In this document: positions 2,968 to 57,204 of the stretch, piece after piece
Position numbering within the stretch: the stretch's first letter is position 1
How the letters are laid out: each line of letters opens with the position of its first letter
Source of the DNA: Kudoa neothunni
Taxonomy: Eukaryota > Animalia > Cnidaria
Length of the DNA: 64,000 bases
Assembly (NCBI GenBank): GCA_964304625.1
Contig: OZ199839.1
Span: 2,573,587-2,637,586, forward strand
Reading direction: 5' to 3'
Position numbers and translations under genes: made by a program
Notes under the pieces: generated by a model
What the model saw: the letters and a program-made list of their open reading frames with translations, nothing else
Databases searched by the model: none
What the model was told of the DNA's origin: nothing

Positions 2968-5900
2968 CAGTGGTTCCCTACAAGTGTTACTCTCGCATCC
3001 CCAGGCAACCACCAAAACTATGTCCGCACCCAACGGTAATTCACCGTAAAAAGGATTAAAGAAAATCATTTCTCTAATACGACCTTAATTACAATTTAAA
3101 TTTATACATTTCAAATTTAATGTATAAACTATTCTTAGGATTAATTGGATTTTATAAAACTACCGACTGGAACAAATTTTCAAGAATGTTCTTGATTAAT
3201 TTTCCATATTTTAAACTTGAAAATACAAAAAAATATTTTATATGCATAACTTAATTAATTTTATCTTTTAAAAATTTTACTATGAAAATCCAAATAAATC
3301 TATTTTTTTAATTATTTACGTACAGTGTTCAAAATAAGAATGAAATTGGCACGCAAAGAAACCAATAAATCCGTTGAAAAAATATTTTAGGAACAACAAA
3401 AAGGATAAAATATTTTTTAATTATCTACTTTCCTGATCTTTGAGATCGTTAATTAACATTTAAATCATGGTTCTTTGTTAGTTACCGAGATTCGAAAATC
3501 ATTCTCAGGATTTAACAAATTTTTATATTTGTTTTTTATATGCAACAAAAATGAAAAACCAGACACACAACCAATTAATGGAAAACGGAACTAGAATACT
3601 TCACTCTCGTATTGCAAGAGATGGATAAGCAGTCAGAGCATGGCATCATAATTCTTCAAGTGTATTTGATTCAAATACGAGTCTCATCGCTTGACTTTCT
3701 TGTAAATCAATTAGCTCCTCTACATCGTGATCGTCATTACGTATATTTACAAATTTAAATGAAAATAAGTTGATGATCCAAACGTCGGATGCGTCCAAAT
3801 TTCCTGCCGAAAAATACCTATCAAATGAGAGAATCAACATTTTAAGGTAGTAAACAATGACAGCCATTACATCTAGTATAAATTTTTGATTATTTTCAAC
3901 CTAAAGAACTTCATTGAGTGATTCAAAATTTGCGAAATTTTCAACTTATATTCTCGAGCTCCACAAAAGTAATTTCTTACAAAATGAACGCAGTTTTCCG
4001 GAGGATCTCACAATAATCATTCCCTTTCCTTTCCTTCCCTTGAATTGAATTGAATAATTCAAATCGTTTTTATGTAAAAATATATCTATCAAATAGACCA
4101 GTACTATTAAAAAGTTCGGCTACTCAGAAGCATCAAACAGCTCTGAATTTTGTTTGCTTCAAAATTCTTTGAGTTCGTTTCTATAGCTAAAAAATCTTCC
4201 CAAGATTTTACCTCGAGAAAGTCATCTTACTTTTTTATGAATTAATAAAACTAAAGAATCATCGTTGAATTCACCACTGCAAAAAACCTTGAACAAGCGA
4301 TGATTTAAAGCTCTTCCACGAATAAAATTAACGATTTCCACAATACATCCAAAATTTTCTTAAAATTATCCGGTAAAGTATAGACATCAACGCTTGACGA
4401 CGAAGAAAACAATGTGTAAACAAAACATCGGGTACTTCAGTTCTAATCAATGAAACAAATCCAGACCTATTACCTAGCATGACTCATGACTGGACCTCTG
4501 TCAATGCAAACAGACCCAATTCGATTCGATGAAATTTTCATATTATTGAAAAAGGTTTCACTGTATTAAATATGTCTTTCGCAGTCGTTATGATTTCAAG
4601 AAGTTTATAGAAAAGAAACTCTTCCTCGATTGGGGTTTCCTTTATATAGCGAAGAAAGCAGAAAAGTTGACTACAATTTTCGACATCCGTGGATTCATCC
4701 AACTGAATTTAAACTTTCAAAGGTTATTATTTGATATACAGAATTATTTGTTTAAGGATATCCTCTCCAGTAGCGTTGATTCTATTTCGAACAACATTAT
4801 TCGACTTAGAAATCCTTTTATATTTATTTGCAGCATCTTCACCCAATACAATTCGTGCTGATTCAATAATGCAGGGTTTTATAAGATTCTCTGCAATTTT
4901 GTGTGGATTTTTATTTTTTCTATTTCATAAGCAAGGATTTATCCAGAGAAACTAATCCCAATTTTGGATGTGTGCCTTCATATCATAGCGGATTCTTTTT
5001 TTTTCAATGAATCAAAATCATTTCCTATCTGTGAACTTCCACCGTGTTTAACCCCCAAAATGCACTTCAAGTTTTGATGATTTCAGATTTGAATTGGAAA
5101 ACGTTGAACTACAAAGCACACAACGAGGTAGATCGATCCCTTCAATAACAATATTTGTGATACCAAATCGAATGTAATGCTCCTTCCATTTTCTAACCTT
5201 TTGTTGATCCATCATAATTCAAACATTTGGAATATTAAAAGAGATTACAGAAATAGAATCCAGATTTATTCTGTTTTTGATTATTGCATCCACAAAACAA
5301 TATCAGTATTTAAATCTATAACTTAAACCATAAAAAAAGATGCGTCAAGATTTTATTTATTAAAATATCAAATCTAAATTGTTAAGTTTTTAAGCGAAGC
5401 GAATAAATCGTTGTAAATTGGAAAATCAAGATCAATACCTATGTCCAAAACGTGATTAGTGATTGTTAATATGTGGGCGACAACGAAAATACTTGAAATT
5501 ATTATAATATTAAACGCTCTGGAATCATTTACTTATATAAAATAAATTTTGTACTATCTATAATTTTTGATGATCTAGACTTAAATTTATACATGAAATA
5601 ATTTCGTGAAATGTGTATCATCTATAAAACATTATTCAACAATATTTTTTATACCTTTTTTAAAAACAATCAAAAATGGAAGCATTATTAATAATATATC
5701 AATGATAACTCTCGAATGTTAGCAATAAGAAAGCCAAACACATTCACACTCACCTCCTTATACTTATTAAATATATGTCAGCGTAATGTTTTATTAAAAT
5801 GGACTAAATAGAATTATCCACTGTAGATGCAGCAGACACTACCATTAGGGTAAGATTCGGTAATAGAATATACTGGCAACGATTCATTTTTAGTATCGGT

Positions 5901-6974: not shown

Positions 6975-9593
6975 TTATTTGATTCCTTTGCTTGAAGCCA
7001 CCTTCTTACGGTAAATGACCAAATAATAAAATAGTCCCGCAGCTACACTTAGCATCACTCCAACAACAGATCCCCTATTTAACTTGTTGAAATTTTTATT
7101 CAGAACAATTTTACGATATAATTCCAGCCACTTTCATGCTAAATATACGTTAGATTATTAGAAAAATCATTTGCTTACTGATTAGAGTCAGCTTTTGCAA
7201 TGGCATCTGGTGCTAAATATACCAATTCACCAATCATATTTCATTTATTGTTTTATTTACTTGAATTTGTATTATTAATTTAGAAAATTTAAACATTTAT
7301 AAGAAATCAATCATATATTTTTATTTAATTATTAAAATTTGAAAAAAGTGACTACCTTTTGGTCGTGGCACGCGTGACTTTGGTGGTCTTTGAAGCTAAT
7401 TTTGAATTTAAGTAAAGAAAAATAAATGGAATTGAATATCACTAAATAATTATTTAATAATCTACTCATTTATATGATGTGATTACCTTGTAGTATCCGC
7501 CACACTCTCAATTTCTATATAACGGTTGTATTTGAAATAAACGAATAAAAATACCCTTTCTCACAATGTATATTGTATCTCCATGCATGTAACTTTCAGG
7601 CTTCACAATTAATTTGTATGATTTTTTGGACGAGACACCAGAGTATGTAATAAAGTTGCATTTTGTATCGCAACTAGCACTTGTTATAAGACACGGAGTT
7701 CCTACTATTTCAGGCTTTCTGGCATCTGTAATATCAATCAAGGTATTGTAACATTTAATTGCTGACATATCTCTCGTAGGATTCATTGCTCCCACAAACT
7801 TTATGGTCTCACCATCAAACAAATGGGTTATGGTTAATGTTGCGCCGTCTAATGAGCAATTTTCATTTAAAATATTCAAAAAAATTACCAGTTAATAACT
7901 CATTAATTTCTGTATCACTTTTTGTACTATCAAATTTTATTAACAAGGAATATTTTGTCCCGCGCTCCAACCTTTCAAGTTCAGCTCGCTCAGAACACAT
8001 TATTCTGCAAGGGAATCTTCCATTACAGTATACATCAGAGTAAAAATTTGTCCATTCATTCTTTACTTTAATTAAACAAGCAATTTTATCATTGTTCTCG
8101 GTCATTGGCTGGAATCGCATCCTTGTATCCATAATGGTTATGTCGGTACTTCCAAGTTGGACTGCATCTCCATCTCCGTCTATACATTTGTTTAAGAAAA
8201 TCATCAAATTTATTTACCTGTAATAAAATAATATTCAAACGTTATTTCTTCCGATCCCTCATTTTTTGCATCCACAGTTACGATATATGCTGTTCCAGCA
8301 CTCAAGTTGGAAACACTTTTTATGATACAGCCAGTGTCACAAGTATCTCCGGAACATTGTCGTTGTATTTTCGTTTTAACTTTTAGATCAAGAGAATTCC
8401 TTACATCAAGTGTACAACTTGAAGCACTAATTGTATCAGTTAATAATTTCATAGTTGTTAAATCTAATGTAAATCCGGCATTTGAAATATCTGTCGGCGT
8501 TATGCCATTATTTGCCACTAAAAAATGTCATTGGGATTAAATTAAAATTTTTTACATGTATAGGTTTTTGTCTCAGCAGTTTTCTTCTTCACTTCGCGGA
8601 TATAAACAGTCACCTGCAAATACGTTGCATCGGCTATCATTACAACCTCAGTACATGGATTAATACATAAAATCGTGTTTATTCCACAGTTTTTCACGTA
8701 ATCATTTTCCCCTGCAGTTTGATCTTTTATTTTAAATTCACATAGCTTATCAGGCTTTTGGTTCAAAATTGTTATTTTATATTTTTGTTCTCCTGAAACT
8801 TGTGTCACTGTGTAGAAAAATTCAGAAAATTCAGAGGCTTTTTGAGTGTATTCGTTATTTATATAATAAAGAAAACTAGGGAAATAATTTCCACATTCTA
8901 AAGTATATTCATATCGATAAGTAGTTAAACTCGCTTTCAATGTGGCTTGATTTGTTGTGGTACAAGTCTCACTTGCCTCTGATTTCGCAATCTCAATACC
9001 GTCTGAGGTCAGCTTGCACTCTGTTATTGGACATATCATGTTATATGTAAACTTAACTTTTTCATCTACAGTTGTTACAGTAATGTCTGGATTCAAAACA
9101 TAGCCTAAATAAAATTAGCATTACCTAAAATATAAATAGCATTTTCTAATAGGTTTACTTCTTGGTATCATAAATACTTTTTTGAGTAATGGATTTTCTT
9201 CTAAGTTTTCTTTTGAATTAATGACTCTTATTAAAACAAATTTTGAATAAAATGAAGCTTCTTCTATATCTATATTGTCTTTATCGCATTGTAGAACGCA
9301 TTTATTTTCTGTTTCTGTGTCTTTACAAAGAAAATCTGCGTAAGTCAATTTATTTTGCTGGTTGAGCTTAGAAATTTGTATATAACATTTTTTATCAGCA
9401 TCAAAATCTTTTAACGATATTTTAATTTTATTTCTATTATTCTCTACTTCAGTGATTCCAAACTCAAGGTAATGTGATTTTCCCTCTGGCTTATCATTGA
9501 AGGAATCTAAAATGTATATATGTTTAATATTATTTAATATAACATACAAAATATGATTGTCGAAAATGTCACAACTGTTACGAGAAGTCTCAT
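6975..9593 (-). CDS. Array copy 1: Cys-containing FN3-like type I membrane protein, 683 aa; exons 9593-9548, 9506-9159, 9104-8556, 8517-8218, 8179-7889, 7848-7555, 7514-7488, 7395-7357, 7212-7179, 7138-7115, 7074-6975
   Basis: Exons sum to 2052 nt (684 codons including TAA) only with stwintron splicing of introns 7 and 8. Signal peptide MRLLVTVVTFSTIIFYSFN; FN3-like motifs (NLSAGTAYIVTVDA, RLERGTKYSLLI); stalk EIESVADTTTSKTTKVTRATTKTPD; TM VAGIISGSVVGVMLSVAAGLFYYLVIY; tail RKKVASSKGIK*. Confidence 0.85.
7213..7487 (-). other. Two [D1,2]-type nested twin introns flanking a 39-nt exon, copy 1 (A 7487-7396, inner 7486-7442; B 7356-7213, inner 7355-7260)
   Basis: A: ACAA|g gtaatc...tttag tgata...aattag|CT. 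B: AAAA|g gtagtc...ttcaag taaat...tttag|CA. Confidence 0.8.
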
Positions 9594-13743: not shown

Positions 13744-16370
13744 TTATCTGATCCCTATGCTCGAAGCCACCTTCTTGCGATAGATAACCAAGTAATAAAA
13801 TAGTCCTGCAGCGACACATAGCATCGCTCCAACAACAGAACCACTATTAAAATTGTTAACAATTCTATTCAGAACAATTTTACGATATAATCCCAGCCAC
13901 TTTCATACTAAATCTATGTTAGATTATTGCAAAAATTATATTTTTACTGGTTAGAGTCAGCTTTTGCAATGACATCTGGTGCTAAATATACCGATTTTTC
14001 AATTATAGTTCATATTTTCATATATTTACTAAACATTATGTTAACATATCAGTATGAGCTCCAAATATTAGTAAATAATGTATTATATATATTACATTAT
14101 TAAAGTATGAATAAATTTCTTACCTTTTGGTTGTGGCGCGCGTGACTTTTGTGGATTTTGGAGCTAATTTTCAAATTGAATAAAAATTGAAAATAATTTA
14201 ATTGTTAATTACTAAATATTCAGTTAATAATTCACCCATTTATTAAACTCGATTACCTTGTGGTATCTGCCACAATCTCATTTTCTATATAATAGGTACA
14301 TTTTAACTAAGCGATTAAAAATACCTTTCCTCACAATGTATATAATATCTCCATGTATGTACTTTTCGGGCTTTACTATTAATTTGTACGATTTTTCAGA
14401 CGAAACACCAGGATAAGTGATTGAGTTGCATTTTGTTTCGCAATTGGTATCAGTCACCAAACACGGAGTTCCTACTAATGTCGGTTTTGTAGCAACTGTG
14501 ATGTCGATCAATGTGTTGTAACATTTAATTGTTGACATATCTCTAGGGGGATTCATGACACCAACAAATTTTATAGTATCAGCATTAATCGAATGCGTTA
14601 TGCTTAATGTTGCACCATCTAAAGAGGTTTAACTATTCATCAATTTAATAAAAATGACCTGTTATCAATCCAGTAATCTCTATATCACTTTTTCTGCTAT
14701 CAAATTTTATTATCAAGGAATATTCGGTCCCGCGTTCCAACCTTTCAAGCTCAACTTGCTCAGAACACATTACTCTGCAAGGAAATCTTCCATTGCAATG
14801 TACATCAGTGTAAAAACTTTGCCATTCAGTCTTTATCTTAATTAAACAAGAAATGTTATCATTGTTCTCGGTCATTGGCTGCAATCGCATTCTTGTATCC
14901 ATAATGTTTATTTTATTACTTTCAAGTTGGATTGCATCTCCGCCTGTATATTTATTTAATAAATTCATTAAATTTATTTACTTGTCTTATAGTAATATTC
15001 AAATTTTGTCACTTCTGAATCATCTTTTTTTGCATCCACAATTATGATATAAGCTGTTCCAGCACTTAAGTTGATAAAACTTTTTTTGTCACGAGTGGTG
15101 GTACATGGTGAAGATGAGCATTCTGGTTGTATTTTTGTTGTAATTGTTGGATCAAGAGCCTTTCTAAAGTGAACTGTACAACTATTCGCCTCATTTGTAC
15201 CAGTTGAAGATTTCATATTTGTCAGATCTAATGTGAATCCGGTGTTTGAACGTTCTGTCGGAGTTATGCCATTGTTTGCAACTATAAGGAAGTTAATCGC
15301 CTCTCTTTGAATTTTCGATACTTGTATAGGTTTTTCTTTGAGGTTCACTTTTGATTACCTCATGGATATAGATGGATACCTGTGGAGAGTTGAGATTGGT
15401 ATTCATCACAACCTCCGTACATGGATTAATGCATGACGTCTCGCTTGATCCACAACTTACCACAAATGTATTATCCCCTTCAGCCTGATTCTTTATCTTA
15501 AATTCACAGAGTTTATCGGGCTTTTGATTTAAAATTGTGATTGTAGTTTTTTGTTTCACGGCGTCTTGAGTAACTTTGAAGAAAAATTCGGAGAACTCAG
15601 AGGCTTTTTTTGTGTATTCATTGTTGATGTAATAAACAAAGCTAGGGAAATAATCACCACACACTAAAGTGTAATCGAATCGATAGGTTATTAAACTTGC
15701 TTTCAAGCTAGCTTGGTTTGTTGTTGTACATGTTTCATCTGCCACTGATTTCACAATATCAATGCCACCTGAGGTCAGTTTACATTCTTTTATAGGGCAA
15801 ACCATGTTATACGTAAATTTAACCTGTTCATCTTCTGTTGTTACAGTTATATCTGGATTCAAAACATAACCTAATTAAAGTTAACATTATTCACAAATAA
15901 AATCAAAGTTTCTAGTAGGATTACTTTTTGGTATCATAAATATTTTTATAAGTGTCGGTTCAGTTACTGAATTTTCTGTTGTGCTAGCAACTTGTATTAG
16001 AATAAATTTTAAAGAAAATGATGCTTCTTCGATGTCAAGATTTTGTGTGTTGCATTCTACAATGCATTTATTAGGTGTTTCAGTGTTTGCACAAGAAAAA
16101 TCTTTGTAAGTAAATTTATTTTCTTCGTTCACTCGTGAAATTTGTATATAACATTTTTTGTTGGCCTCAAAATCTTTTAACGATATTTTAACTTTATTTC
16201 TATTATTTCCTACTTCGGTGATTCCAAACTCAAGATAATCTGATTTCTCCGCTGGCGCAGTATTGAACGAACCTAAAATATATCAATGTATATATACATA
16301 ATACGAATAAATAAAAATTACAAAGTATAAATGTTGAAATAGTCACAACAGACGCAAACAGTCCCATCAT
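13744..16370 (-). CDS. Array copy 2: FN3-like type I membrane protein (11 exons)
   Basis: Start (M)MGLFASVVTISTFILC; same exon structure as copy 1. ORF-track pieces 15887-16132, 15293-15862, 14974-15348, 14645-14968 and 14278-14556. Stalk ENEIVADTTTPKSTKVTRATTKTPD, TM exon, stop at 13744-13746. Confidence 0.85.
13982..14257 (-). other. Two [D1,2] twin introns, copy 2 (A 14257-14164, inner 14256-14212; B 14124-13982, inner 14123-14029)
   Basis: Reconstituted outer donors are GTAATT and GTAAAT; exon 14163-14125 is 39 nt. Confidence 0.82.
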
Positions 16371-17304: not shown

Positions 17305-19165
17305 TGTGGCGGATTAACATTGGATTAACAGTGTTTTACTTGCGCTATAATTGGTGATCCCTAGACAAATGTCCTTTTTCAAAAGCAATGAAAACGACGC
17401 TAATATAACCGCTGATGCAGCGGCTACCAAGCTATCCCAATTTTGGACATCACAAACCAAAATTTAGTTCAATCAGATCCAAGCTCAATTCCATATTCCC
17501 ATATTCGAGGAATCAAGCAAGACGATACCAAATTATATCATGTGATCGCGGCGTTAGACCGAGAAACCGTCATAAGAATCACTGACCTTTTGGAAGATCC
17601 ACCCAAGACGCAAAAGTACGATACCCTCAAAAATAGGCTCATTGGCACGTTTGGTCTCATCGAAACTAAGAGATCTAGACGATTATTACACATGCCGGAA
17701 TTTGGAGACCGAAAACCATCTGCTCTCTTTGATGAGATGTTGTCGTTTATGGGAGATCACAGACCTTGTTTCTGGTTCAATTATATATTTATGCAACATT
17801 TGCCTGAGAACATACGAACTCAACTTTCTTAGAAATCTTTCGAAAACACCAGAAATATGGCTGAATTAGCTGACTTACTTTGGTTAGCGAAAGATGCTAA
17901 CAATGATGCCTACATAAATGAAATTGCAAACATGAATAAAATTTCTCTTCCTTCGACAATGGATGATAACAATTCCAATCAAGTTACCAACGATGTATGC
18001 TTCTACCATCGTAAATTTGGAAAAATTTCCAGGAAGTGTTTGAAACCCTGCAGATTTGCGGGAAACTTCCAAGCCAGGCGGCAATAATTACAAGTGCGTC
18101 CGGCAGCCGAAATAATTTGTTATATTTATTTGACACAAGATCTAAAACACACTTCCTCGTAGACTCAGGTGCACAAGTGAGCGTCTATCCATATAATGAT
18201 TACGACACGCTAGTTAACAACCAAAAGTTCCTGATAGCCGCCAATGACTCCAAAATTTTTTTGTTTGGTAATAAAAAATTGGAGCTTACCTTCCAAGGTG
18301 TTACATATCGTTGGACTTTTGTAATCGCCAAGGTATCACAACCTTTATTGGGATCTGACATCCTCAAACATTATGGGCTACTAACTGACATAGGAAATAA
18401 AAAGCTTGTCTCTCCTCAAAACTCACTAACAATACCCTTATTCAGTCGAAACTTTGGAACAACGCAGATAGCATCAAACTTCTACCTTACCGACGAACCA
18501 TTTTCAAATAAACCCAAACACAGCATACGATTTATCATTGCTATCGATGGACAACCAGTCCATGCGAAACCTCGACGGCTTTCTCCACAAAAATTAAAAG
18601 CAGCCAAAGAAGGTTTCCAAAAAATGGATCAACTAGGAATTGTTAGACAATCCTCAAGTCCTTGGTCTTCACCGTTGCACATGGTACCCAAAAAGGACGG
18701 ATCACGGAGACCATGGGTGGATTATAGGAAACTAAACAATATTACACGACCAGACAGGTATCCTACACCCAATATCAATGACAACACCTTCAAACTCCAT
18801 GGCTGCATTTTCTGTTCCAAAATTGATCTAATTCATGGTTATAATCGGATTACTGTGAAACCTGAGGATATTCCCAAAACGACTGTCACTACACCTTTTG
18901 GACGGTATGAATTCCTGAGGATGCTTTTCGGTCTCAAAAATACTGCCCAAATCTTCCAAAGACATCTTGACAATATTTCTGGAGATTTGGAATATGTATT
19001 TGCTTATTTGGATGACTTTTCAGTTGCTAGTAAAACCTTGGCAGAACACGAAAAACACGTCGAAAAAGTTAGATTGCGTCTTATTTAGAATGGCTTATCA
19101 ATTAATGAAGATAAATATGTTTTCAGAAAACCTGAAATATCCTACTTGGGGCACAAAATCATTCG
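17305..19165 (+). mobile_element. Degenerate, 3'-truncated Ty3/gypsy LTR retrotransposon (gag-protease-RT)
   Basis: PBS-like tggtgatccc at 17352. Gag-like KLSQFW..*F.QIQAQF and CFYHRKFG..SRKC.KPC; protease FLVDSGAQVS; RT SPWSSPLHMVPKKDG, DYRKLN, YLDD. No RNase H or integrase visible. Confidence 0.9.
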
Positions 19166-21633: not shown

Positions 21634-24253
21634 CTATCTGCTTCTTCCACCCATTGCAACCTTCTTTCGGTAAATAACCATGTAATAGAACAATCCTCCT
21701 GCTACGCATAGTAATACTCCAATAACACTCCCCCTAACAAAATCGTCATTTATTTTATATTAAGAAATGTTACGATATAATTCCTGCGGTCTTTAAGCTA
21801 TATTTATTATTAGCATCATATTCGAAGAATTTATATTTTACTGGTTTGAGTTCACTGGTGCAATAATATCAGGGGCTAAAAATAGAATTATCGAATTTTC
21901 CTTTTTAATATTTTTCAGGGTTTACTATAAAATAAATATTATTTTAAAATTCTAATAGAGATGTTGTTTATGCATTTTTATTGGACCAATATTGTAAAAA
22001 TATGATTTTGAATAGTTTTAATCATGATCAAATCGCTTACCCTTTTGTGGTTCTCCGAATAACTTTATTTGTAGGTGAAGCTAACGTTGTAAATTAAATG
22101 ACTATAATTTACATTTGTACTTACTAATCAATATTTAACGACGTTCATTTAAAAATTTTAATACCGTGTATTTTCTTCTACTTTAACGGTCGCTATTAGA
22201 AGATTAATTTATTATTTTTTAAGCGAAATACTTGGTCTGATCGTATAAATCGTTTCTCCATGTATATATCTCGCAGGTTTCACAACAAGTTTATATGTCT
22301 TTTTAGGGGAATAATCTCTGTATGTCATTGTATCGCATTTTATTTGACAACTTGTGTCAGATTCTGTGCAGGGAGATCCAATTTGTGTTGGATTGGTAAC
22401 ATCCGTGATATCAAGTAATGTGTTATAGCATATTATTTGAGACATATCTCTTGGTGGATCCATGACCGCAGAAAAAGTTACACTTTCACCATTTATTTTG
22501 TGACTTACAATTAATGTTGCCCCATCTACATTATATAACGATTGCAAAACTAAGCATTAATACCTGTTAACAATCCATCAATTTCCTTATCATTTTTAGA
22601 ACTATCGAACTTTATTAAAATCGAATATGTTGTTCCTCTTTCCAATCTTTCCAGCTTAATTGATTTAGAGCACATTATTCTGCATGGGAATCTTCCATTA
22701 CAATAGGCGTCAGTATAGAATTTTGCCCATTCGCTCTTTATTTTGACCATGCAAGCGACTTTATCCTCGTTTGTAGTCATTGGTTGAAATCGCATTCTTG
22801 TGTCCAAAACTGTTATTTCTTCATTGGAAAGGGTGATGTCCTCTCCAACTATTGAATGATATAATTTAGTTATACACAAAATTTATCACTTGTTTTAATA
22901 TAAAATTCGGACGTTGTTTCCATATTATCTTTATTTGCAACAACAATGACGACGTAATTTGTTCCCTTAGTTAAGGAGGAAACACTCTTGCTATTGCAAC
23001 TGTTCCCACAGTTAATATTAGAACATTGGGTTTCAGTTTTTGTTGCTACGTTAGGATCAAGGGCTTTTCTCGTGTACACAGTACAACTGGCTGCAGCTGT
23101 ACCATCTGAGGATTTCATACTCGAAACATCTAATGTAAATTCGGTTTGTGTCACACCTGATGCCTCTATGGCATTATTTTCAACTAAAGATATATTAGAT
23201 AGAGTTAAATTAATTTTTAATACTTGTATATATTTTTATTTGAGGTGTTATATTGGGTATTTCACGAATCATAACTGACGCCTGTTGGTAAGTCACATCT
23301 ACTTTCATCACGACCTCGGTGCAAAGACTTATGCACGAAGTCGTGCCTGTTCCACAAGTAGTTACATATGTTTTATCTTCGGCAGATGCATCTTTTATCT
23401 TGAATTCACAAATTCTATCAGGCTTAGGGTTCAGAATACTAATTTTAGTATTTGATTGGCCCGTTTCTCTAGTAACCTTGATGAAAAAATTTGAAAATTC
23501 TGATGCTTTTTTTGTGTATTTATTATGGAAATAATATATAAAATCCGGGAAAAAATCATCACATTTTAAAGTATATTCATGTCGATACGTCAGAAAACTT
23601 GCTTTTAGACTAGCTTGACTTGCTGATGTACAAGAATCTGAGCCGACGGTAGATTTGTCAATTTCAATGCCATCAGAAGTAATGTTACACTCTGTTATAG
23701 GGCAAATCTTATTGTAAGTAAACTTAATATCATTATTATCTTTTGATACAGTTATATCTGGGCTCATTATATAGTCTACAAATATAAAAAATTTAATAAG
23801 CTCTGCGATCTGATGATTGTATTACTTTTCGGTATCAAAAAGACTTTCGTAAGAGTTGGTGCATTTTCAGCATTGGCCGCCGTATCGGCAGCCTTTACTA
23901 AAACAAATATTGTTGAAAATGAGGCTTCTTCTAAATCTAATTCTTGCGTATTGCAAGGAACAACACATTTATTTGATGTGTCGGTTCTGATACAACTAAA
24001 GTCTTTGTATGACAATTTGGTTCCTTCTATGTTGGATAATTGTATATAGCATTGATCTGTAGTGATGAATCCTTTGAATGATATTTTAAGTTTATTCCTC
24101 TTATTTTCTTCTTTTTTCATCCCAAATTCTAGATAATTTGTTTTTTGCGCATCCTGAGTATTTATCACGCCTAAAAAATATGTATAAAGATGGATAAAAG
24201 CATCTACCTATGAATAAAATTAGAAAAACGTAAATTTCAACAAATATCGCCAT
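21634..24253 (-). CDS. Array copy 3 (most divergent paralogue): FN3-like type I membrane protein (11 exons)
   Basis: Start MAIFVEIYVFLILFIGVINT. ORF-track pieces 23776-24168, 23210-23767, 22870-23154, 22550-22879 and 22212-22547. Stalk TTVKVEENTPSPTNKVIRRTTKAPD; TM TAGIISGSVIGVLLCVAGGLFYYMVIY; tail RKKVAMGGRSR*. Confidence 0.85.
21876..22165 (-). other. Two [D1,2] twin introns, copy 3 (A 22165-22081, inner 22164-22124; B 22041-21876, inner 22040-21925)
   Basis: A: ACAC|g gtatta...gattag taagt...gttag|CT (outer donor GTAAGT). B: AAAG|g gtaagc...tatag taaac...tttag|CC. Confidence 0.85.
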
Positions 24254-29927: not shown

Positions 29928-32554
29928 TTATCTGATCCCTTTGCTCGAAGCCACCTTCTTGCGATAGATAACCAAGTAATAAAATAGTCCTGCAGCGACA
30001 CATAGCATCGCTCCAACAACAGAACCACTATTAAAATTGTTAACAATTCTATTCAGAACAATTTTACGATATAATCCCAGCCACTTTCATACTAAATCTA
30101 TGTTAGATTATTACAAAAATTATATTTTTACTGGTTAGAGTCAGCTTTTGCAATGACATCTGGTGCTAAATATACCGATTTTTCAATTATAGTTCATATG
30201 TTTATATATTTACTAAAAAGTATATAATTATAAAATTACGAAGTCCAAATATTTATGAGAAATGAATTATGTAATTTTATTATTAGAATATGAATAAATA
30301 GCTTACCCTTTGGTTGTGGCACGCGTGACTTTTGTGGTCGATGGAGCTAATTTTCAATTTAAAACAAAATAAAGAAATAATCTAACTGATGATTACTAAA
30401 TAAATATATAATAATTCAGTCGTTTATTAAACATGATTACCTTGTAGTATCTGTCACACTCTCACCTTCTATAGAATGATTGCATTTCAAATAAACAATT
30501 AAAAATACCTTTTCTCACAATATATATTGTCTCTCCATGCATGTATTTTTCAGGTTTCACAATTAATTTGTATGATTTTTCGGATGAGACACCAGTATAT
30601 GTGATTGAGTCGCATTTTGTTTCGCAAACTGCACTGGCCGTAGATGTCGCAGGGCACGGATTCCCCACTATTTTAGGTGTTGTAGCATCTGTAATATCAA
30701 TCAATGTATTAGAGCATTTTATTTCTGCCATATTTCTTGATGGATTCATAGCTCCGACAAACTTTATGGTCCCGCCATTAAACGAATGTGTTATGGTTAA
30801 TGTTGCACCATCTAATGAAAAGGTTAAATTGAAAAATAAAACGAGAATTACCTGTTATCAATTCTTCAACTATTTTATCACTTTTTGTGCTATCAAATTT
30901 TATCATCACGGAGTATTGTGTCCCGCGCCCCAATCTTTCGAGTTCAACTTGTTCAGAACACATTACTCTGCAAGGGAACCTTCCATTGCAATGTACATCA
31001 GTGTAAAAACTTTGCCATTCAGTCTTTATCTTAATTAAACAAGAAATTTTATCATTGTTCTCGGCCATTGGCTGCAATCGCATTCTTGTATCCATAATGT
31101 TTATTTTATTACTTTCAAGTTGGATTGCATCTCCGCCTAAGTGCTAATTTTAAATTTTCACTAAAATTTATTGACTTGTTTTTAAGTAATATTCAAACGT
31201 TGTAGTTTCTGTTTCACCATTTTTTGCTTCAATCATTATTACATAAGTTGTTCCAGCACTTAAGTTTGTAACACTTTTACTGTCACAAGTGGTTGTGCAC
31301 GTTTCTTGTGAGCATTGTGGTGTTTTTCTTGTGGCTGTTGGATCAAGGGCCTTTCTTACATAAACTGTACAACTAATAGCGCCATCTGTACCAGACGATA
31401 ATTTCATATGTGTTAAATCTAAAGTAAAACCAGTGTCTGAAAGTGCGGTTGGGACTATTCCATTGTTTGCAACTATAACAAAGTTAATCATCCTTCCTTT
31501 AAATTTTTATACTTGTGTAGGTTTTAATTGGATCTACTTCCTTGGTCACTTCACGGATAAAAACAGATCCTAATTGGAAGTTTGCATCAGCTATCATTAC
31601 CACCTCAGTACATGGATTAATACATGACGTTACACTTGATCCACATTTTTTCACATATTCATTATTTCCTGCACTTTGTTTTTGTATCCTAAATTCGCAG
31701 AGCTTATCAGGTTTTTGATTCAGGATTGCAATTTTATATTTATCATCTGATTCTTTTGCCATTGTGAAGAAAAATTCAGAAAATTCAGAGGCCTTTTTTG
31801 TGAATTCATTATTTACATAATAAACAAAAATGGGGAAGTAATCGCCGCATTCTATAGTATAATCGTAACGATAGGTTATTAAACTTGCTTTCAAAGTAGC
31901 TTGACCCGCTGATTCACAATTATCACTTTCTCCTGATTTCGCAATCTCAATACCATCTGTGTTTAGTTTGCATTCAGATATTGGGCATAACATTTTGTAA
32001 TTAAACTTGACTTTTTCATTTTCTTTTTGTACAGTTATATCTGGATTCAGAACATAGCCTAAGTATAGTTAAGATCATCGAAAATCTAAATTATGTTCTA
32101 TATTTAGATTACTTTTTGGTATCACAAAAACCTTTTTAAAATTAGGATTAGATTCAGCCTTTTCTTTTGTATCAGCAAATTTAATTAAAACAAAGGTTGC
32201 AGAAAAAGAAGCAATTTTGATCTCCAGGTTTTCTGTCGTACATGGCACAACGCATATACCGATTTTTTCAGTGTTTAAACAAGGAAAATCTTCGTAAGCA
32301 ATTTTTTTTTCATTGTTGATTTTAGAAAGTTGTATGTGACATATAAAATTGGCATCAAAATTTTTTAGCGATATTTTAATTTTATTTCTATTATTTGACT
32401 CTTCGGTGATTCCATACTCAAGGAAATTTGATTTTATCGTTGGTGAAACATTTAACGAATCTAAACATATCCATGTGTATATATGTAATATAAATTAATC
32501 AAACTAACAAAGTATGAAGGTTGAAAAAGTCACAACTGACAGAAGAAGTCGCAT
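29928..32554 (-). CDS. Array copy 4: FN3-like type I membrane protein (11 exons)
   Basis: Start MRLLLSVVTFSTFILYSLN. Exon 2 is open but absent from the ORF track. Pieces 31499-31993, 31168-31491, 30778-31095 and 30462-30749; TM exon; stop at 29928-29930. Confidence 0.85.
30166..30441 (-). other. Two [D1,2] twin introns, copy 4 (A 30441-30347, inner 30440-30396; B 30307-30166, inner 30306-30213)
   Basis: Outer donors GTAATC and GTAAAT after inner excision; exon 30346-30308 is 39 nt. Confidence 0.82.
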
Positions 32555-33995: not shown

Positions 33996-35276
33996 TAGAG
34001 TTTTTTGAGCATTAACGACATTTACCTATTTTTAGCTTATAAATGGGTAAAAAAAATTTTTTTCGAATAGTACAATTAAAAAAAGCAATATTGTAAATTA
34101 ATGTAATATTTATAGCAATGTATCTTAGCATCTACATGTAGTACCCAGAACAATCAGCTGAGGTAATAGTATGGAAACCGTCATCAATTAATTTTAATAG
34201 ATCTGGTTCATTTTTGGCTTCATCCCTGACAACACTATTGTTCTATTTGCTAGACACATTTTCAATAGGGTTGAGAAATGGGTAATACGGAGTTAGATAC
34301 GTCAAGGATAATTGTAATGTTTCTATGACTTCTTCAAGTCTTTGATAATGGTGTACCCCTGCATTATCTAAAATAAAGCAAGGATCTTCTACCCCATTCG
34401 TTTGACATAAACTTGAAAGCTCTGTAAGAAAAGCTTAAAAGACCTCCCTATTGACTTGCTGACGATTAATTTTATAAAAAATTACCCTGTCCTTATTCAT
34501 GGATGCTATTACTGATATATTTCTTGTTCTAACACAGGGATCAGGAATATATGCAGATGTGCCTGCGAGGGAACGACCAAACCTTGTCCTACTTGAGACA
34601 CTGAATCCAACTTCGTCAATAAAGACAAAGTTTTTCCCATCAGTCTCAAGTAGTTTTGAATTAAACTTTCGGGCATAAGCAAGACATTGTCCCAAGGTGC
34701 TATCACAATTTCTCCTTCGCGGAACAATTGTTGCTGTTTTTAGCGAGTAATGGGATTCGCCTAAGTATCTATTAAAAATACTCAAGTTAACATTCTCGCC
34801 GCATTCGTCTATCAGTTTTTTCCGCAATGCTTTCAAGATAATCGTGGCTTCTTCATCTACCCAACTTCATACCATTGACTTTTCATTGCTATTAAGTTTT
34901 GTGGAATAATCTCCACCTCGTTTCTTAGATTCAACTTTCCCGTCAATTAGATTTAAATAAACAATTGTGGCGACCATGGTTCTTTTAAGTTCTACATTCT
35001 CAGCAATAAAAGAGTCACTGTATCCTTTTTTTGCTTTGCTTAATTATCATTCGCCTTGTATCGTTTGGTACTGATTGCCTTTTATTTTGTCTAGTAGGAG
35101 GTATTATTTGAGAATTGTTTGTGTTAATTTGAAGTTTAATCAGTTACATATTCTCAAATAATGTTAATTATTTAACCATTCGGCATATATTTAATAACGT
35201 CAAGATCGCCAGGATATATCAGTAACTCAAGTGTCGTTAAGGTTTGATACAGTGTCGTTAAAGCTCTAAAACCCTA
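33996..35276 (-). mobile_element. Tc1/IS630-type transposon with degenerate transposase
   Basis: TIRs tagagttttttgagcattaacgaca / tgtcgttaaagctctaaaacccta, TA flanks. DDE motifs FIDEVGF, ILDNAGVHH and YPFLNPIEN. Confidence 0.9.
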
Positions 35277-36324: not shown

Positions 36325-38956
36325 TTATCTGATTCCCTTGCTTGAAGCCACCTTCTTGCGGTAAATAACCAAATAATAAAATAATCCTGCAGCTACACAT
36401 AGTATTACTCCAACGACAGATCCCCTATTAAAATTGTTAACATCTTTATTCAGAACAATTTTACGATATAATCCCGGCCACCTTCATACTAAATCTATGT
36501 TAGTTCATTACAAAAATTATCTTTTTACTGGTTAGAATCAGTTTTTGCAATTACATCTGGTGCTAAATATACCATTTTTCAATTATACTTTATATATTCA
36601 TGTATTTACTAAAAAGTATATAATTATAAAATTAAGAAGTCCAAATATTTATGAGAAATGAATTATGTAATTTTATTTCATTATTAGTATATGAATAAAT
36701 AGCTTACCCTTTGGTTGTGGCACGCGTGACTTTTGTGGTCGGTGGAGCTAATTTTCAATTTAAAACAAAATAAAGAAATAATCTAATTGATAATTACTAA
36801 ATATTTATATAATAATTCAGTCGTTTATTAAACATGATTACCTTGTAGTATCTGTCACACTCTCACCTTCTATAGAATGATTGCATCTCAAATAAACAAT
36901 TAAAAATACCTTTTCTCACAATATATATTGTTTCTCCATGCATGTATTTTTCAGGTTTCACTATTAATTTGTATGATTTTTCAGATGAAACACCAGTATA
37001 TGTGATTGAGTCGCATTTTGTATCGCAAACTGCACCGGCCGTAGATGTCGCAGGGCACGGATTCCCCACTATTTTAGGTGTTGTAGCATCTGTAATATCA
37101 ATCAATGTATTAGAGCATTTTATTTCTGCCATATTTCTTGATGGATTCATAGCTCCGACAAACTTTATGGTCCCGCCATTAAACGAATGTGTTATGGTTA
37201 ATGTCGCACCATCTAATGAAAAGGTTAAATTGAAAAATAAAACGAGAATTACCTGTTATCAATTCTTCAACTATTTTATCACTTTTTGTGCTATCAAATT
37301 TTATCATCACGGAGTATTGTGTCCCGCGCTCCAATCTTTCGAGTTCAACTTGTTCAGAACACATTACTCTGCAAGGGAACCTTCCATTGCAATGTACATC
37401 AGTGTAGAAATTTGTCCATTCATTCTTTATTTTAATTAAACAAGCAATTTTATCATTGTTCTCGGCCATTGGCTGTAATCGTACTCTTGTATCCATAATG
37501 TTTATTTTATTACTTTCAAGTTGTACCGTATCTCCATCTGTATATTTATTTAATAAATTCACAAAATTTATTTACTTGTCCTTAAATAATATTCAAATGT
37601 TGTCACTTCTGAATTATCCTTTTTTGCATCAACAATTATGATATAAGTTGTTCCGGCAATTAAGTTGGAAATGCTTTTAGTGTCACAATTGGTGGTGTGT
37701 ACTGCATCTGAATATTGCGGTTCTTGTTTTTTTGTAATTGTTGGATCAAGAGCCTTTCTCATGCTAACAGTACAACTGTTAGCATCACTTGTACCAGTTG
37801 ATGACTTCATATTTGAAAAATCTAGTGTAAATCCGGTGTTTGTAGTATCTTTCGGAGTAATATCATTATTTGCCACTATAAGTAAGTTAATCGTCTTTCA
37901 TTTAACTTTTTATACTTGTGTGTGTTTTAACTTGATCTTCTTTCATTGTCACTTCACGAATATAAACAGATTTCAGTTGAAAATTTTCGTCGGCTTTCAT
38001 TACAACCATGGTACATGGATGAATACATATATCCGAGTTTATTCCACAATTTTTCACGTATTCTTTTTCTCGTGCAGTTTGATTTTTTATTCTGAATTCG
38101 CAAAGTTTATCAGGTTTTGGATTTAGAATTGTAATTTTATATTTTTCATCTCCTGATTCTTTAGTCACTTTGAAGAAAAATTGGGAATATTCAGAGGCCT
38201 TTTTTGTATATTTATTGTTTATATAATAAACAAAATTAGGGAAATAATCGCCACATTCTAATGTATAATCGTATCGATAGGTTATTAAACTTGCCTTCAA
38301 ACTAGCTTGATTTTCTGTCTTACAAGTATCACTTGTCTCTGATTTCACAACATCAAAACCACCTGAGGTCAGTTTGCATTCTGTTATTGGACATATCATT
38401 CTATAAGTAAACTTGATATTTTCCGCTTCCGTTGTTACAGAAATTCCTGGATTCAAAACATAGCCTAAAAAAATTAAGAATACCCAACAAATCAATTGTA
38501 TTCTCTAGAAGGATTACTTTTTGGTATCAAAAAAACCTTCCTAAAGGTGGGATTAGATTCGGCGTTTTCGTTTGTATCAGCAACTTTGATTAAAATAAAT
38601 ATTGCTGAAAAAGATGCCACCTTCACCTCCAGATTTTCTTTATCACATGACACAACGCATTTACCACTTATTCCAGTGTTATCACAAGACAAATCTTCGT
38701 AAATCAATTGGTTTTCGCTGACTTTTAAAATTTGAATGTGACAGCGTTTAGTGGCATCAAAACTCTTTAGCGATATTTTAATTTTATTTCTATTATTCGT
38801 CACTTCGGTGAGTCCAAATTCAACGTAATTTGATTTTGTCGTAGGGTCAGCATTTAACGAACCTATAATATATCCAGGCGTGTATAATAATATAAACAAA
38901 TACAACTTACAAAATATGAATGCGGAAAAAGTCACAACGGACATAAACAGTCCCAT
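36325..38956 (-). CDS. Array copy 5: FN3-like type I membrane protein (11 exons)
   Basis: Start MGLFMSVVTFSAFIF. ORF pieces 38492-38956, 37902-38495, 37568-37876, 37179-37562 and 36863-37150; TM exon; stop at 36325-36327. Confidence 0.85.
36563..36842 (-). other. Two [D1,2] twin introns, copy 5 (A 36842-36748, inner 36841-36797; B 36708-36563, inner 36707-36609)
   Basis: Outer donors GTAATT and GTAAAT; exon 36747-36709 is 39 nt. Confidence 0.82.
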
Positions 38957-46134: not shown

Positions 46135-48758
46135 TTATCTAATTCCTTTGCTTGATGCCACCTTCTTGCGATAGATAACCAAATAATAAAACAATCCAGC
46201 AGCTACACATAGAATCACTCCCAACAACAGATCCTCTATTAAAATTGTTACATCCCATTTTCAGAAAGATTTTACGATATAATTCCAGCCACTTTCATAC
46301 TAAATTTATGTTAGCTAATTACAAAAATAATCTTTTTACTGGTTGGAGTCTGCTTTTGCAATGATATCTGGCGCTAAATATACCATTTTTCAATTATACT
46401 TTATATATTCATGTATTTACTAAAAAGTATATTATTGTAAAATTACGAAATCAATATTTTAATAAGAAATAAATTATATAATTTTTTATAGTTAGAATAT
46501 GAATAACTTGTTTACCCCTTAGTTGTGGCACGCGTAATTTTTGTGGTTGATGGAGCTAATTTTCAAATTTAAATAAATGTGTAAATAATTGAGTTGATGA
46601 TTACTAAATATACTACTAAATCATTAATTTATTAAACGTTGTTTACCTTGTAGTATCTGTCACACTCTCACCTCTCTATAGTAATGATTGCATTTCAAAT
46701 AACCAATTAAAAATACCTTTTTCTTCACAATATATATTGTATCTCCGTGCATGTAGTTTTCAGGCTTCACTATATAATTTGTACGATTTGTCCGATGAGA
46801 CACCAGAGTATGTGATTGAATTGCATTTTGTTTCACAACCAGCACCGGTGGCAAGACACGGAGTTCCCACTGTAATGGGTTTTGTAGCATCTGTAATATC
46901 AATCAATGTATTGTAACATTTTGTTGTTAACATGTCTCTCGGGGGATTCATAACTCCGGCAAAAGTTATGGTCCCGCCATTAAACGAATGGCGTTATGGT
47001 TAATGTTTGCACCATCTAAGATGAGATAATTATTCATCAATTTATATAATAAGTACCTGTTGTCAATCCAGTAACTATTTTATCATTTATTTTTCATCAA
47101 ATTTTATCATCAAGGAATATTTGGTACCGCGCTCCAGCCTTTGAAGTTCAACTCTCTCAGAGCACATTACTCTGCATGGAAAATCTTCCGTTGCAGTATA
47201 CATCAGTATAAACATTTGTCCATTCATTCATTATTTTAATTAAACACGCAATATTATCATTATTCGGAGTCATTGGCTGGAATCGAATGTCTTGTATCCA
47301 TGATATTTATATTTGTAGTTGGAAGTTCTAATTCTTCTCCACCTAAGTGCTTATGGATAAAATTTATTTTATAAAACTTAATACTGGTTTTTATATAGTA
47401 TTGATACGTCGTTTGTACTGTCCCTGCATCCGTCGTATCAACCATAATAACGTATGCTGTTCCGGTATTTAAGATGTTAACCCTTTCGTTATTACGGCTA
47501 CTGCCACAGCTCCCATCCGAACATTGTAATTGTGTTTTTGTTGTAATTGTTGGATCAAGGGCCTTTCTTACGTAAACTGTACAACCAGTAGCGTCACCTG
47601 TACCAGATGATGATTTCATATTTGCTAAATCTAAAGTAAAACCAGTAACTGAAAGTGCGGTTGGGATTATTTTATTTATTTGTCACTATAACAAAGTTAA
47701 TCGCCCTTTCTTTACTTTTTATACTTATGTAAGTCTTAATTTGATGTACTTTTTTTGCCACCTCACGAATATAAACAGACTCCAGTTGAAAGTTTGTATC
47801 GGCTCTCATTTCAACCTCAGTACATGGATGAATACATATTTTCGAATTTTCTCCACAGTTTGTCACATATTCATTTTCTCCTGAAGTTTTATCTTTTAAT
47901 CTAAATTCGCAGAGCTTATCAGGTTTTTTGTTAATAATTGTAATTTTATATTTTTCATTTCCTGATTCATTTGTCACTGTGAAGAAAAATTCAGAAAATT
48001 CAGGAGCCTTTTTTGTGTAATCATTGTTGATATAATAAACAAAACTAGGGAAATAATCGCCGCATTCTAAAGTGTAATCGTACCGATAGGTTATTAAACT
48101 TGCTTTCAAGCTAGCTTGATCTGTTGATTCACATGTTACAGTTTGTTCTGATCCCACAATATCAATACCATCTGAAGTCAGTTTGTATTGTGTAATAGGA
48201 CAAATCATGTTATATGTAAACTTAATATTTTCAGCTTCCGTTGTTACAGTAATACTAGGATTCAGAACGTAGTCTTAGTAAAATTAAGATTATTCAAAAA
48301 ATAAATGGCATTTTTTAAATGAATTACTTTTTGGTATCATAAATACTTTTTTGAGTAATGGAATCGTTCCCAACTGTTCATTTGAGTTAAAAACTTTAAT
48401 TAAAATAAATTTTGAATAAAATGAAGCTTCTTCCACTTCTATACTTTCCTTGTTGCATGCTACAATGCATTTTGTATCTGTTGGAGTTTCTGTACATTTG
48501 AAATCTGCGTAAATCAATTTATTTTGCTGGTTAAGCTTAGAAATTTGTATGTAACATATTTTTCCGACATCAAAATTTTTCAGCGATATTTTAATTTTAT
48601 CTCTTTTGTTGTCCACTTTAATGAAACCAAACTCAAGGTAGTTTGATTTCGTCGTTGTTTCAATGCTTATAGAAACTAAATAATATTTAAACAATAATGT
48701 AACAAAAGTTACGTAATGCGGAACTTAAAATGAACCCAACTGATAAAAGAAGCTTCAT
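46135..48758 (-). pseudogene. Array copy 6: frameshifted paralogue (pseudogene or consensus errors)
   Basis: Exons 1-3 and 8-11 look intact. Multiple single-base indels lie between ~46670 and ~47680; the first produces VTNK* at 47672. Confidence 0.65.
46374..46647 (-). other. Two [D1,2] twin introns, copy 6 (A 46647-46556, inner 46646-46604; B 46516-46374, inner 46515-46420)
   Basis: Outer donors GTAATC and GTAAAT; exon 46555-46517 is 39 nt. Confidence 0.78.
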
Positions 48759-55250: not shown

Positions 55251-57204
55251 TGAACTTTCCATCACAATTTTTGCATTGTAGAAATGAAATTTCAAAGGAT
55301 GAAAGTGATCTTATCGCTCAATTTGTTTAAGTTGACGGAAATTCCAAAGTAATCCAAGAAAAAATATTACGAGAAAGGGGAATTTTGTTTCATTGAATAA
55401 AGTGTCTAACATGAAGCACTCTTGTAAATCACATACAAAGAGCCTGTAATTTTAAAAATATTCAAATAAAAAAGGATGATGTTTAGAGATATGGGAAATC
55501 AACAATGAGACTATAGGCTGCGACATATGTCTTCAATCGAGCTATTTTAAATGCCAACATATTAAACTGAACCCGTCCTCAAAATATTAGAGTTGTATGA
55601 ATTGTAAAACAGAAGAATGATAGTAAGAGAAATTATGGTAAAAAAACTTTAGTTTTAATAAAGATCGAACTTTTAAATTTATATAAATATAAAATATATT
55701 TAATTTCGATTATGAAATATATTTTTATTTTTTTAATATATCTTTCAATTAATTAATGACTGACTTTTAAAAGTTACCAGTTAATCTTTTGATTATTTTA
55801 AGACAATTCTATTAGACAGCACCGAAAAATTTAAATTATTTCAAAATTTAATATATATATATATATAATAAAATTTATTAGACATCATATACCATATAAC
55901 ATAAAATTTTCTACTTTATATATTCATATTGGAATATATTTTATGGCGGAATTAAGAGACAATACATTCAGCCATGCTTATAGCACGCTTTATTGGGGAA
56001 CCGAAATTATGTACGTTATACAAATTAGGCTTGCAATAAATATCCCATGCATGTGCATGATTGTCGTAAAAAATCTTGTCAGAATAAATATTCTTGTGAC
56101 AAGCAAACTGTTCTTTTTGAAATTATTCGTATTAAATCTATTTTATCCCTCGTAAATTGAAGATCTGAGATCTCAGACATAACAGGGTAAGAATTGCTAT
56201 ACCGTATGGATCTATTAAATGTGATTTGATCAACAGATACTGTATTTTTTATTTTTTCAATGTTATTAAAAAATTTCATGACAACATCATTTTTTCCTTG
56301 TTATCTGGTGGATCATAGTTATTATTTACTTTGATGTAATTAATCGACCTATAATTTTTTTTATATATATCCGACTATTTTTACTTTTAAAATATATTTA
56401 TATTTAATTTAATGATAATCATCCACAACTACAAATTCTCAGTCCTTTGTATGAGCTTAATTGGCGACTAGGTGATTTCTATTATCGTTTCTAATTTTAA
56501 AAAATTCGGCATTGTTTGCGCATAAGTTTAAATTGAATTCATGCCGGGTTCTTTAAAATTTCATTCAAACTCCTTACCTATATTTCTATCTCTAATGAAT
56601 AAATTCTAAATTCGTCATTATGAATTCCCCAATCTTATCGTTTATGTTGTGGGGGGAAGCTTTAGTTCTTACAATAATTCAGCCTTTATTTGGCGCTATA
56701 TCATTATCGATGATATATTTAATCATCATGGTAGCAATATCTATTAGTAATTGAACTGACTTGCGATTATTTGCACTGCAGAAAATAAATTATTCAATGT
56801 AGTAATTTAATTGTGGAAAAAACAATATTAACTTTAAAAATGTAATTTATTTCAATAGAATTTTGAAATGTGGGGCTTAGATTTTAATGCGTCGTAGAAA
56901 CTGGGTACGCTATATCCATTTTGGTACCGTGACCTCTACTTTGTCTACATTTAAGTTTATATAATACATTTTCAATAGCCTATAAACCTGGAAAAATGTA
57001 TATTGTTTATTATCAGTAATAATGATAATTTAATAAAATTTGGCTATATTCATACGATCAATAACCACGCCTGACTACAAGTAATCCAAAAGTTCAGTAG
57101 TTAATAAAAAAATAAATCATAGATTTATGATAAACCGTATATAAATATGTTGATAATAATTCTATCAATGTATTTAAAAAAAATTCTGATGTATACAAAA
57201 TTTA

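Follow-up and report, generated by a model that had tools for sequence, protein, structure and literature searches.

Putative tandem [D1,2] spliceosomal twin introns in a surface-protein gene family of the myxozoan cnidarian Kudoa neothunni

Introduction

Stwintrons of the [D1,2] type have been described in ascomycete fungi, in which the donor of an outer intron is split between its first two nucleotides by an inner U2-type intron (PMC12403724, PMC9024468, PMC5587772, PMC6616335). Both units are of the short size that is ordinary for the organism, missplicing in one step would retain a single G and shift the reading frame, and some fungal stwintrons have a dual [D1,2]/[A2,3] layout. So far, stwintrons have been regarded as peculiar to fungi and taken to prove strict intron definition.

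As to animals, the literature that we searched for nested, twin or GG-AG introns yielded only recursive splicing, intrasplicing, U2/U12 twintrons and junction-regenerated sites. Recursive splicing at AG/GT ratchet points or RS-exons in Drosophila and vertebrates, and splicing at junction-regenerated sites (PMC8184009), proceed by an ordered removal in several steps in which the first step exposes a donor at the new junction. In these systems the GT lies intact downstream of the AG, forming a zero-length exon, and the events take place in long introns or as an error; junction-regenerated splice sites are held down by the exon junction complex (PMC8184009). Intrasplicing (protein 4.1R), nested introns (dystrophin) and U2/U12 twintrons (such as prospero) are also complex animal introns with more than one splicing reaction or pair of splice sites, but in none of them is a splice element interrupted by another intron (definition in PMC5587772). 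No animal stwintron was reported in the literature that we searched, in which the primary descriptions are all fungal; most subscription journals lay outside its coverage, and priority is not fully confirmed.

Here, we analyze a 64,000-nucleotide stretch of the Kudoa neothunni genome (the window), in which a sequence-only reading had proposed a [D1,2] intron at intron 7 of seven paralogous genes. We suggest, with a probability of roughly 85% and on comparative sequence evidence, that introns 7 and 8 of these genes are tandem donor-disrupted [D1,2] spliceosomal twin introns. They share with the fungal [D1,2] stwintrons the position of the inner intron, the ordinary short size of both units, the retained G and shifted frame that missplicing in one step would cause and, at 11 sites of a second gene family (family B), the dual layout. 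Unlike the fungal cases, they belong to an animal host, form a tandem pair around one short exon at a fixed juxtamembrane position and have spread by gene duplication and not as sequence-similar mobile sister introns at new positions; moreover, their signals are reduced (GTA and TAG, without a clear branch motif) and the splicing intermediate has not been shown. Relative to the mechanism already known from fungi, it is the animal host, the tandem pair and the multigene family that would be new. The Kudoa introns resemble recursive and junction-regenerated sites in the ordered removal, and they differ from them in that the AG and the GT share one G, the G of the donor comes from upstream, the complete introns are only 77-167 nt long and the second step is needed for the frame.

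Results

Host genome and splice signals

The sequence-only reading had judged that the host was not a typical ascomycete, and the window indeed comes from an animal, the myxozoan cnidarian K. neothunni, a parasite of tuna. The published assembly consists of three chromosomes and a mitochondrial circle, with a listed intron length of 49 bp (PMC12239612). A (TAAACC)n array lies at the end of the contig that carries the window, and the same telomere motif is present at one chromosome end in the published assembly (PMC12239612). In myxozoans, splice signals are reduced to GTa and AG and branch signals are weak (PMC13644364). Ordinary introns of the genes analyzed here (the 14 family-A genes) are 37-54 nt long, with ~40 nt being typical, and signal scoring of ordinary introns gave a weak enrichment of A 11-13 nt before the AG and no clear branch motif. 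Two copies of Mago nashi lie on chromosome C2 near 11,544,000 and 11,584,000, and at least one subunit of the exon junction complex is thus retained.

Apart from the paralogues, the window carries a farnesyltransferase beta gene (61448-62635, plus strand) with one ordinary 45-nt intron at 61790-61834. Its product is at most ~50% identical to any named protein, with matches that are mostly animal, and a relative in a public run (L001) that is 57% identical has an intron at the same place. An LTR-retrotransposon-like fragment with a reverse transcriptase (Pfam RVT_1, E 3.8e-20) lies between copies 2 and 3 (18036-19088, plus strand), a DDE transposase fragment (Pfam DDE_3, weak) lies at 34435-34836 on the minus strand, and a decayed hAT/ZBED-like transposase remnant, judged by eye only, lies at ~3400-5200 on the minus strand.

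Anatomy and reading frame of introns 7 and 8 in family A

Family A comprises seven tandem minus-strand paralogues in the window (Table 1) and seven further copies elsewhere in the genome. The gene models of all 14 copies have 11 exons, and the ectodomain exons are of phase 1-1. All seven intron-7 intervals reported by the sequence-only reading are present on the minus strand, and each of the seven window copies has the G before the GT, the internal TAG followed by TRA and the inner and outer pieces of 41-45 nt and 44-50 nt that it had described. In the 14 family-A copies together, intron 7 reads G/GT..TAG/TR..AG, its inner intron measuring 40-45 nt and its outer intron 43-50 nt. Intron 8 has the same design in 14/14 copies, with an outer intron of 47-51 nt and an inner intron that measures 94-116 nt in 13 copies and 42 nt in one. 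The paralogue L003 has a compact intron 8 of 90 nt. At six intron-8 sites a TAG precedes the chosen internal acceptor; intron 8 of copy 3 and of its sister copies L004-L008 contains an extra conserved TAG ~25-28 nt upstream of the internal AG/T, possibly a relic acceptor of a lost micro-exon in this clade.

Table 1. Positions of the family-A genes and of their putative twin introns in the window. Lengths of inner and outer introns are in nt; G1 is the first nucleotide of the outer donor.
Feature	Position	Strand	Description
Copy 1 gene	6975-9593	-	11 exons, 681-aa type-I membrane protein
Copy 1 exon 7	7488-7514	-	27 nt, phase 1-1 once G counted as intronic
Copy 1 intron 7, G1 of outer donor	7487-7487	-	invariant
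Copy 1 intron 7, inner intron	7442-7486	-	GT..TAG, 45 nt
Copy 1 intron 7, rest of outer intron	7396-7441	-	47 nt with G1; rebuilt donor GTGATA
Copy 1 exon 8	7357-7395	-	39 nt, phase 1-1
Copy 1 intron 8, second [D1,2] candidate	7213-7356	-	G1 at 7356; inner 7260-7355, 96 nt; outer 48 nt; rebuilt donor GTAAAT
Copy 1 exon 9	7179-7212	-	34 nt, phase 1-2
Copy 1 exon 10	7115-7138	-	
Copy 1 exon 11 (transmembrane/stop)	6975-7074	-	
Copy 2 gene	13744-16367	-	
Copy 2 intron 7	14164-14257	-	inner 45, outer 49
Copy 2 intron 8	13982-14124	-	inner 95, outer 48
Copy 3 gene	21634-24253	-	
Copy 3 intron 7	22081-22165	-	inner 41, outer 44; rebuilt donor GTAAGT
Copy 3 intron 8	21876-22041	-	inner 116, outer 50
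Copy 4 gene	29928-32554	-	
Copy 4 intron 7	30347-30441	-	inner 45, outer 50
Copy 4 intron 8	30166-30307	-	inner 94, outer 48
Copy 5 gene	36325-38956	-	
Copy 5 intron 7	36748-36842	-	inner 45, outer 50
Copy 5 intron 8	36563-36708	-	inner 99, outer 47
Copy 6 gene	46135-48758	-	several frameshifts
Copy 6 intron 7	46556-46647	-	inner 43, outer 49
Copy 6 intron 8	46374-46516	-	inner 96, outer 47
Copy 7 gene	57205-59829	-	
Copy 7 intron 7	57625-57715	-	inner 41, outer 50
Copy 7 intron 8	57443-57585	-	inner 96, outer 47; rebuilt donor GTAAGT

Counting the G before each GT as intronic in both introns gives an open type-I membrane protein of 678-685 aa that ends in a transmembrane segment and a short basic tail in 12/14 family-A copies; the other two carry unrelated 1-nt indels. 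In copy 1, an N-terminal hydrophobic leader is followed by Cys-rich FN3-like repeats, Thr/Ser-rich stalk micro-exons, the transmembrane segment and the short tail. Copy 6 carries several 1-nt insertions, one of them in exon 7, and is either a pseudogene or the product of an assembly error at low coverage. An eighth copy just beyond the window (L002) is almost the same in the 3' part and free of the insertions.

The frame of the exons around the two introns agrees with this assignment. Exon 7 has the claimed 27 nt plus the G, is of phase 1-1 after removal of the G and is stop-free only in phase 1. Codon positions bear out the earlier claim that exon 8 is read from phase 1: in this frame, which is free of stops, single-base differences between copies give 22 synonymous and 16 non-synonymous codon pairs, whereas the two other frames give 2/35, with stops, and 7/29. 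For entry into exon 9 in phase 1 the counts are 15/9, against 2/25 and 3/22. The transmembrane exon is reached in frame only when the G of intron 8 is dropped as well, a point that was missing from the earlier proposal. Between exons 6 and 9, the family-A copies share no canonical GT-AG exon chain. Copy 3 and three sister paralogues do have a formal canonical escape, through a micro-exon of 11 nt and then an intron of 31-32 nt, which is not conserved in the others.

A dispersed second family and a genome-wide scan

A genome-wide pattern search led to family B, a dispersed group of ~66 loci (within L012-L080) on all three chromosomes (C1-C3). These longer multi-domain relatives have two tandem G/GT..TAG/TA..AG introns at the same gene position as family A. 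The two families are distantly related (profile comparison, E 2.7e-5), and an exon of a third subfamily matches both (E down to 1e-10 and 1e-9). The 3' exon series of family B is collinear with that of family A and consists of the last domain exon, a 24-nt micro-exon, a complex intron, an exon of 78-84 nt, the second complex intron and the ending exons, i.e. a phase 1-2 exon, a phase 2-2 micro-exon and the transmembrane exon. This collinear position suggests that the pair arose once before the split of families A and B, a shared origin that we infer. With the Gs removed the model is open in 46/46 family-B segments, and with both Gs kept a stop is met in 45/46. Four loci (L070, L075, L076 and L079) were left out of the family-B scoring; L079, a truncated copy with a stop in a domain exon, has the sole inspected site without the G, with an A in its place.

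In total, the apparent twin-intron design is found in ~70 surface-protein genes, with a tandem pair in each. An assembly error as the source of the design is ruled out by its presence at >70 loci on three chromosomes. The third subfamily comprises at least 150 loci of related Cys-rich FN3-like surface proteins, and the one member that was inspected in this respect (L009:2130-5140, C3 near 8,587,000-8,590,000) is without the two stalk exons, and its introns near the membrane segment are all ordinary.

The family-B domain is predicted to fold as a 7-strand beta-sandwich (pLDDT 85), with FN3 domains as the best structural neighbours (TM ~0.6), and from this family-B model we infer an FN3-like fold for the family-A domain. 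The predicted sandwich and the phase 1-1 domain exons are reminiscent of tandem FN3-domain surface proteins, which the family differs from in that no Foldseek match of the family-B domain reached E 0.001, no Pfam family was significant and no homologue outside the K. neothunni genome was found in searches that used single exons, the alignments A1 and A2 among them, and not the joined model, whose translations served only to check the frame. No orthologue of these genes turned up in another species, a single low-coverage assembly is the source of all evidence, and the protein family looks lineage-specific.

A genome-wide scan with a strict form of the pattern gave no clear excess outside families A and B. 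Of its 26 matches, 18 belong to these families and a further 7 lie outside repeats, compared to ~20 non-repeat matches for a control with A before the GT. The strict pattern recovers only ~1 in 8 of the known sites and may miss other cases. Within this limited sensitivity, a genome-wide habit of twin introns is unsupported, the outside matches being near the control level, and the design seems largely confined to the A/B superfamily. One match outside both families (C2 8732214-8732312, plus strand), at which a search for the family-B domain was negative, may represent a further subfamily. A histone H3-like coding sequence lies downstream of a chance pattern match (L021, near C1 6,944,100).

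Conservation of the splice signals

The base before the GT is a G at 14/14 and 14/14 sites in family A and at 58/58 and 54/54 scored sites (B1 and B2) in family B; the base before that G varies, and at several ordinary introns the last exon base varies among copies. The internal motif was scored in 132 introns in four position classes (14 and 14 in family A, 57 and 47 at sites 1 and 2 of family B). YAG/TR at a distance that gives an outer intron of normal size is present in 131/132, the exception being AAG/TA, and in family B the internal TAG/TR is found in 57/57 and 47/47; shuffled interiors carry such a motif at 0.06-0.09 per intron and ordinary introns of the same genes in 9/247 cases. Given that the copies are related by descent, the 132 introns are not independent trials. 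Nevertheless, the family-B interiors have a median identity of 0.65-0.66, compared to 0.62-0.63 after shuffling, and form 14-15 clusters at 80% identity; the motif is thus intact in interiors that are nearly saturated, arguing that it is under selection and not merely inherited.

By signal scoring, the visible GT is a good donor, and the rebuilt donors have medians of 6.8-6.9 bits against 6.9 bits for ordinary donors. The inner acceptors reach 4.5-5.9 bits against 6.9 bits for ordinary ones, and the outer acceptors of intron 7 are low (median 0.7 bits; small training set). Outer introns measure 36-59 nt across the classes, and none of them contains an earlier YAG.

None of the RNA runs on record covers this region. 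Three raw RNA runs under the name of this species placed 0, 0 and 1 reads on window positions 57000-62800 and are practically without Kudoa reads; RNA reads from Kudoa were reported to be insufficient in the genome paper (PMC12239612).

Discussion

Judged from sequence, the Kudoa introns work like a [D1,2] stwintron and meet all criteria that can be applied at this level: (i) an internal canonical intron lies between G1 and position 2 of the external donor (131/132), (ii) its removal rebuilds a canonical external intron of normal size, and (iii) the frame needs removal of the whole, including G1, without a canonical one-step alternative, apart from the micro-exon and bypass exceptions discussed below. 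The [D1,2] reading accounts at once for the frame, for the invariant G and internal TAG/TR and for the ordinary size of both pieces. The support that the earlier proposal for intron 7 gains in this way is comparative only, and both the step order and the existence of intermediates are inferences. Against the reading weigh the lack of RNA evidence, the dependence on one assembly, the inner introns of intron 8, which in 13/14 copies exceed the norm and in six cases have a TAG further upstream, the bypass AG at site 2 of family B and the low-scoring outer acceptors of intron 7.

We suggest that, by intron definition, the visible GT would initially be paired with the first good YAG, at a distance of ~40-45 nt (more in intron 8), and that removal of the inner intron would join the upstream G to TRA, giving a normal GTA-type donor. 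In the second step, this rebuilt donor would pair with the distal AG 43-51 nt on, and the outer intron would leave together with the G; the exons would then be joined in phase 1 and the frame would continue into the transmembrane exon. Removal in one step would keep the G, shift the frame and lead to a stop before the membrane anchor.

This last outcome could in principle be the dominant one. One-step splicing from the visible GT would give truncated or secreted ectodomains or decayed mRNA, the membrane form would be made by skipping exons 7 and 8, and the two-step route would be minor or unused. The strength of the visible donor is compatible with this possibility, as is the finding that the end of exon 6 and the start of exon 9 are both in phase 1, so that skipping would be in frame; furthermore, missplicing with retention of the G is documented for [D1,2] stwintrons in fungi (PMC12403724), and at site 2 of family B, 32/46 copies, but not the other 14, could bypass the two-step route in frame by one-step splicing to an AG that lies four bases inside the next exon. 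However, the membrane frame is the only one in which exons 7 and 8 are conserved and free of stops, skipping them needs an intron of at least 300 nt where introns are ~40 nt, and the invariant G and the invariant internal TAG/TR would be left unexplained. We consider dominant one-step splicing improbable.

Alternatively, each complex intron could be a single non-canonical GG-AG intron that is removed in one step, with the internal TAGTA serving as another signal such as a branch site or a protein-binding site. The mature mRNA would be the same, and the frame evidence therefore cannot separate this possibility from two-step removal. An invariant G in the internal motif is unsuited to U2 branch pairing, and a perfect GT one base away would have to be ignored. 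The motif is rare in ordinary introns of the same genes; its distance to the distal AG is one intron length, and the acceptor context before it is T-rich. The reduced splice signals of myxozoans (PMC13644364) would leave room for such an intron, whereas FlyBase annotates no GG-AG intron among ~60,000 Drosophila introns (PMC4528330). On balance, we regard a one-step GG-AG intron as very improbable.

Hidden canonical micro-exons of 3n+2 nt, or editing after splicing or ribosomal frameshifting, might also restore the frame. These genes are rich in micro-exons, and formal GT solutions exist in 15/132 introns, including those of window copies 3 and 6; but they are absent from 117/132, differ in position between copies and often need introns of 30-32 nt, a conserved zero-length AG/GT site is lacking (AGGT in 1/132 interiors), and recoding would leave the internal motif unexplained, making this solution hardly tenable. 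The rarity of AGGT, the AG/T site and the short introns also mean that the definition of ratchet-point recursive splicing is not met. Least credible of all is a reverse, [A2,3]-like order, in which the downstream intron would leave first from the GT overlapping the internal AG and the upstream intron would then use TA plus the first exon base as acceptor: this dual layout is described in fungi (PMC5587772) and would be canonical, with the same mRNA, where the next exon starts with G (9 B1 and 2 B2 sites), but in family A the first base of the next exon is C or T, and in family B it is mostly A, so that no AG is rebuilt and this cannot be the general route. The earlier exclusion of [A2,3], argued from an exon that starts with C, consequently holds for family A and is formally undecided at those family-B sites.

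Sister stwintrons or introners were also considered as a source of the [D1,2] candidates, and their definition is not met: interiors of families A and B are at shuffled identity (0.62), and all inspected real sites lie at the same gene position. Retention of the pair may be sufficiently explained by the frameshift that loss of either internal acceptor would cause. A regulatory role of the tandem pair in the choice between membrane and secreted forms is speculation. In the most far-reaching version, these would be the first animal stwintrons and the pair would be a maintained gate, in which two-step removal gives the membrane-anchored protein and one-step removal or cross-pairing gives truncated, secreted or stalk-shortened forms across ~80 variable surface-protein genes; we put this forward as a tentative idea that is unlikely to hold in full.

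The two-step reading has consequences for how these genes are annotated and studied. These surface proteins will probably be truncated or mis-modelled by gene predictors, and in compact animal genomes apparent GG-AG junctions are worth re-examination. With their diverged copies, the ~70 genes amount to a series of natural mutants in which the rules of ordered splicing, and single-base shifts of introns, can be studied. If true, a conserved and apparently obligatory metazoan case would imply that spliceosomes of animals can rely on a donor put together across a newly formed junction; such events are normally suppressed in animals via the exon junction complex, of which Mago is present in K. neothunni.
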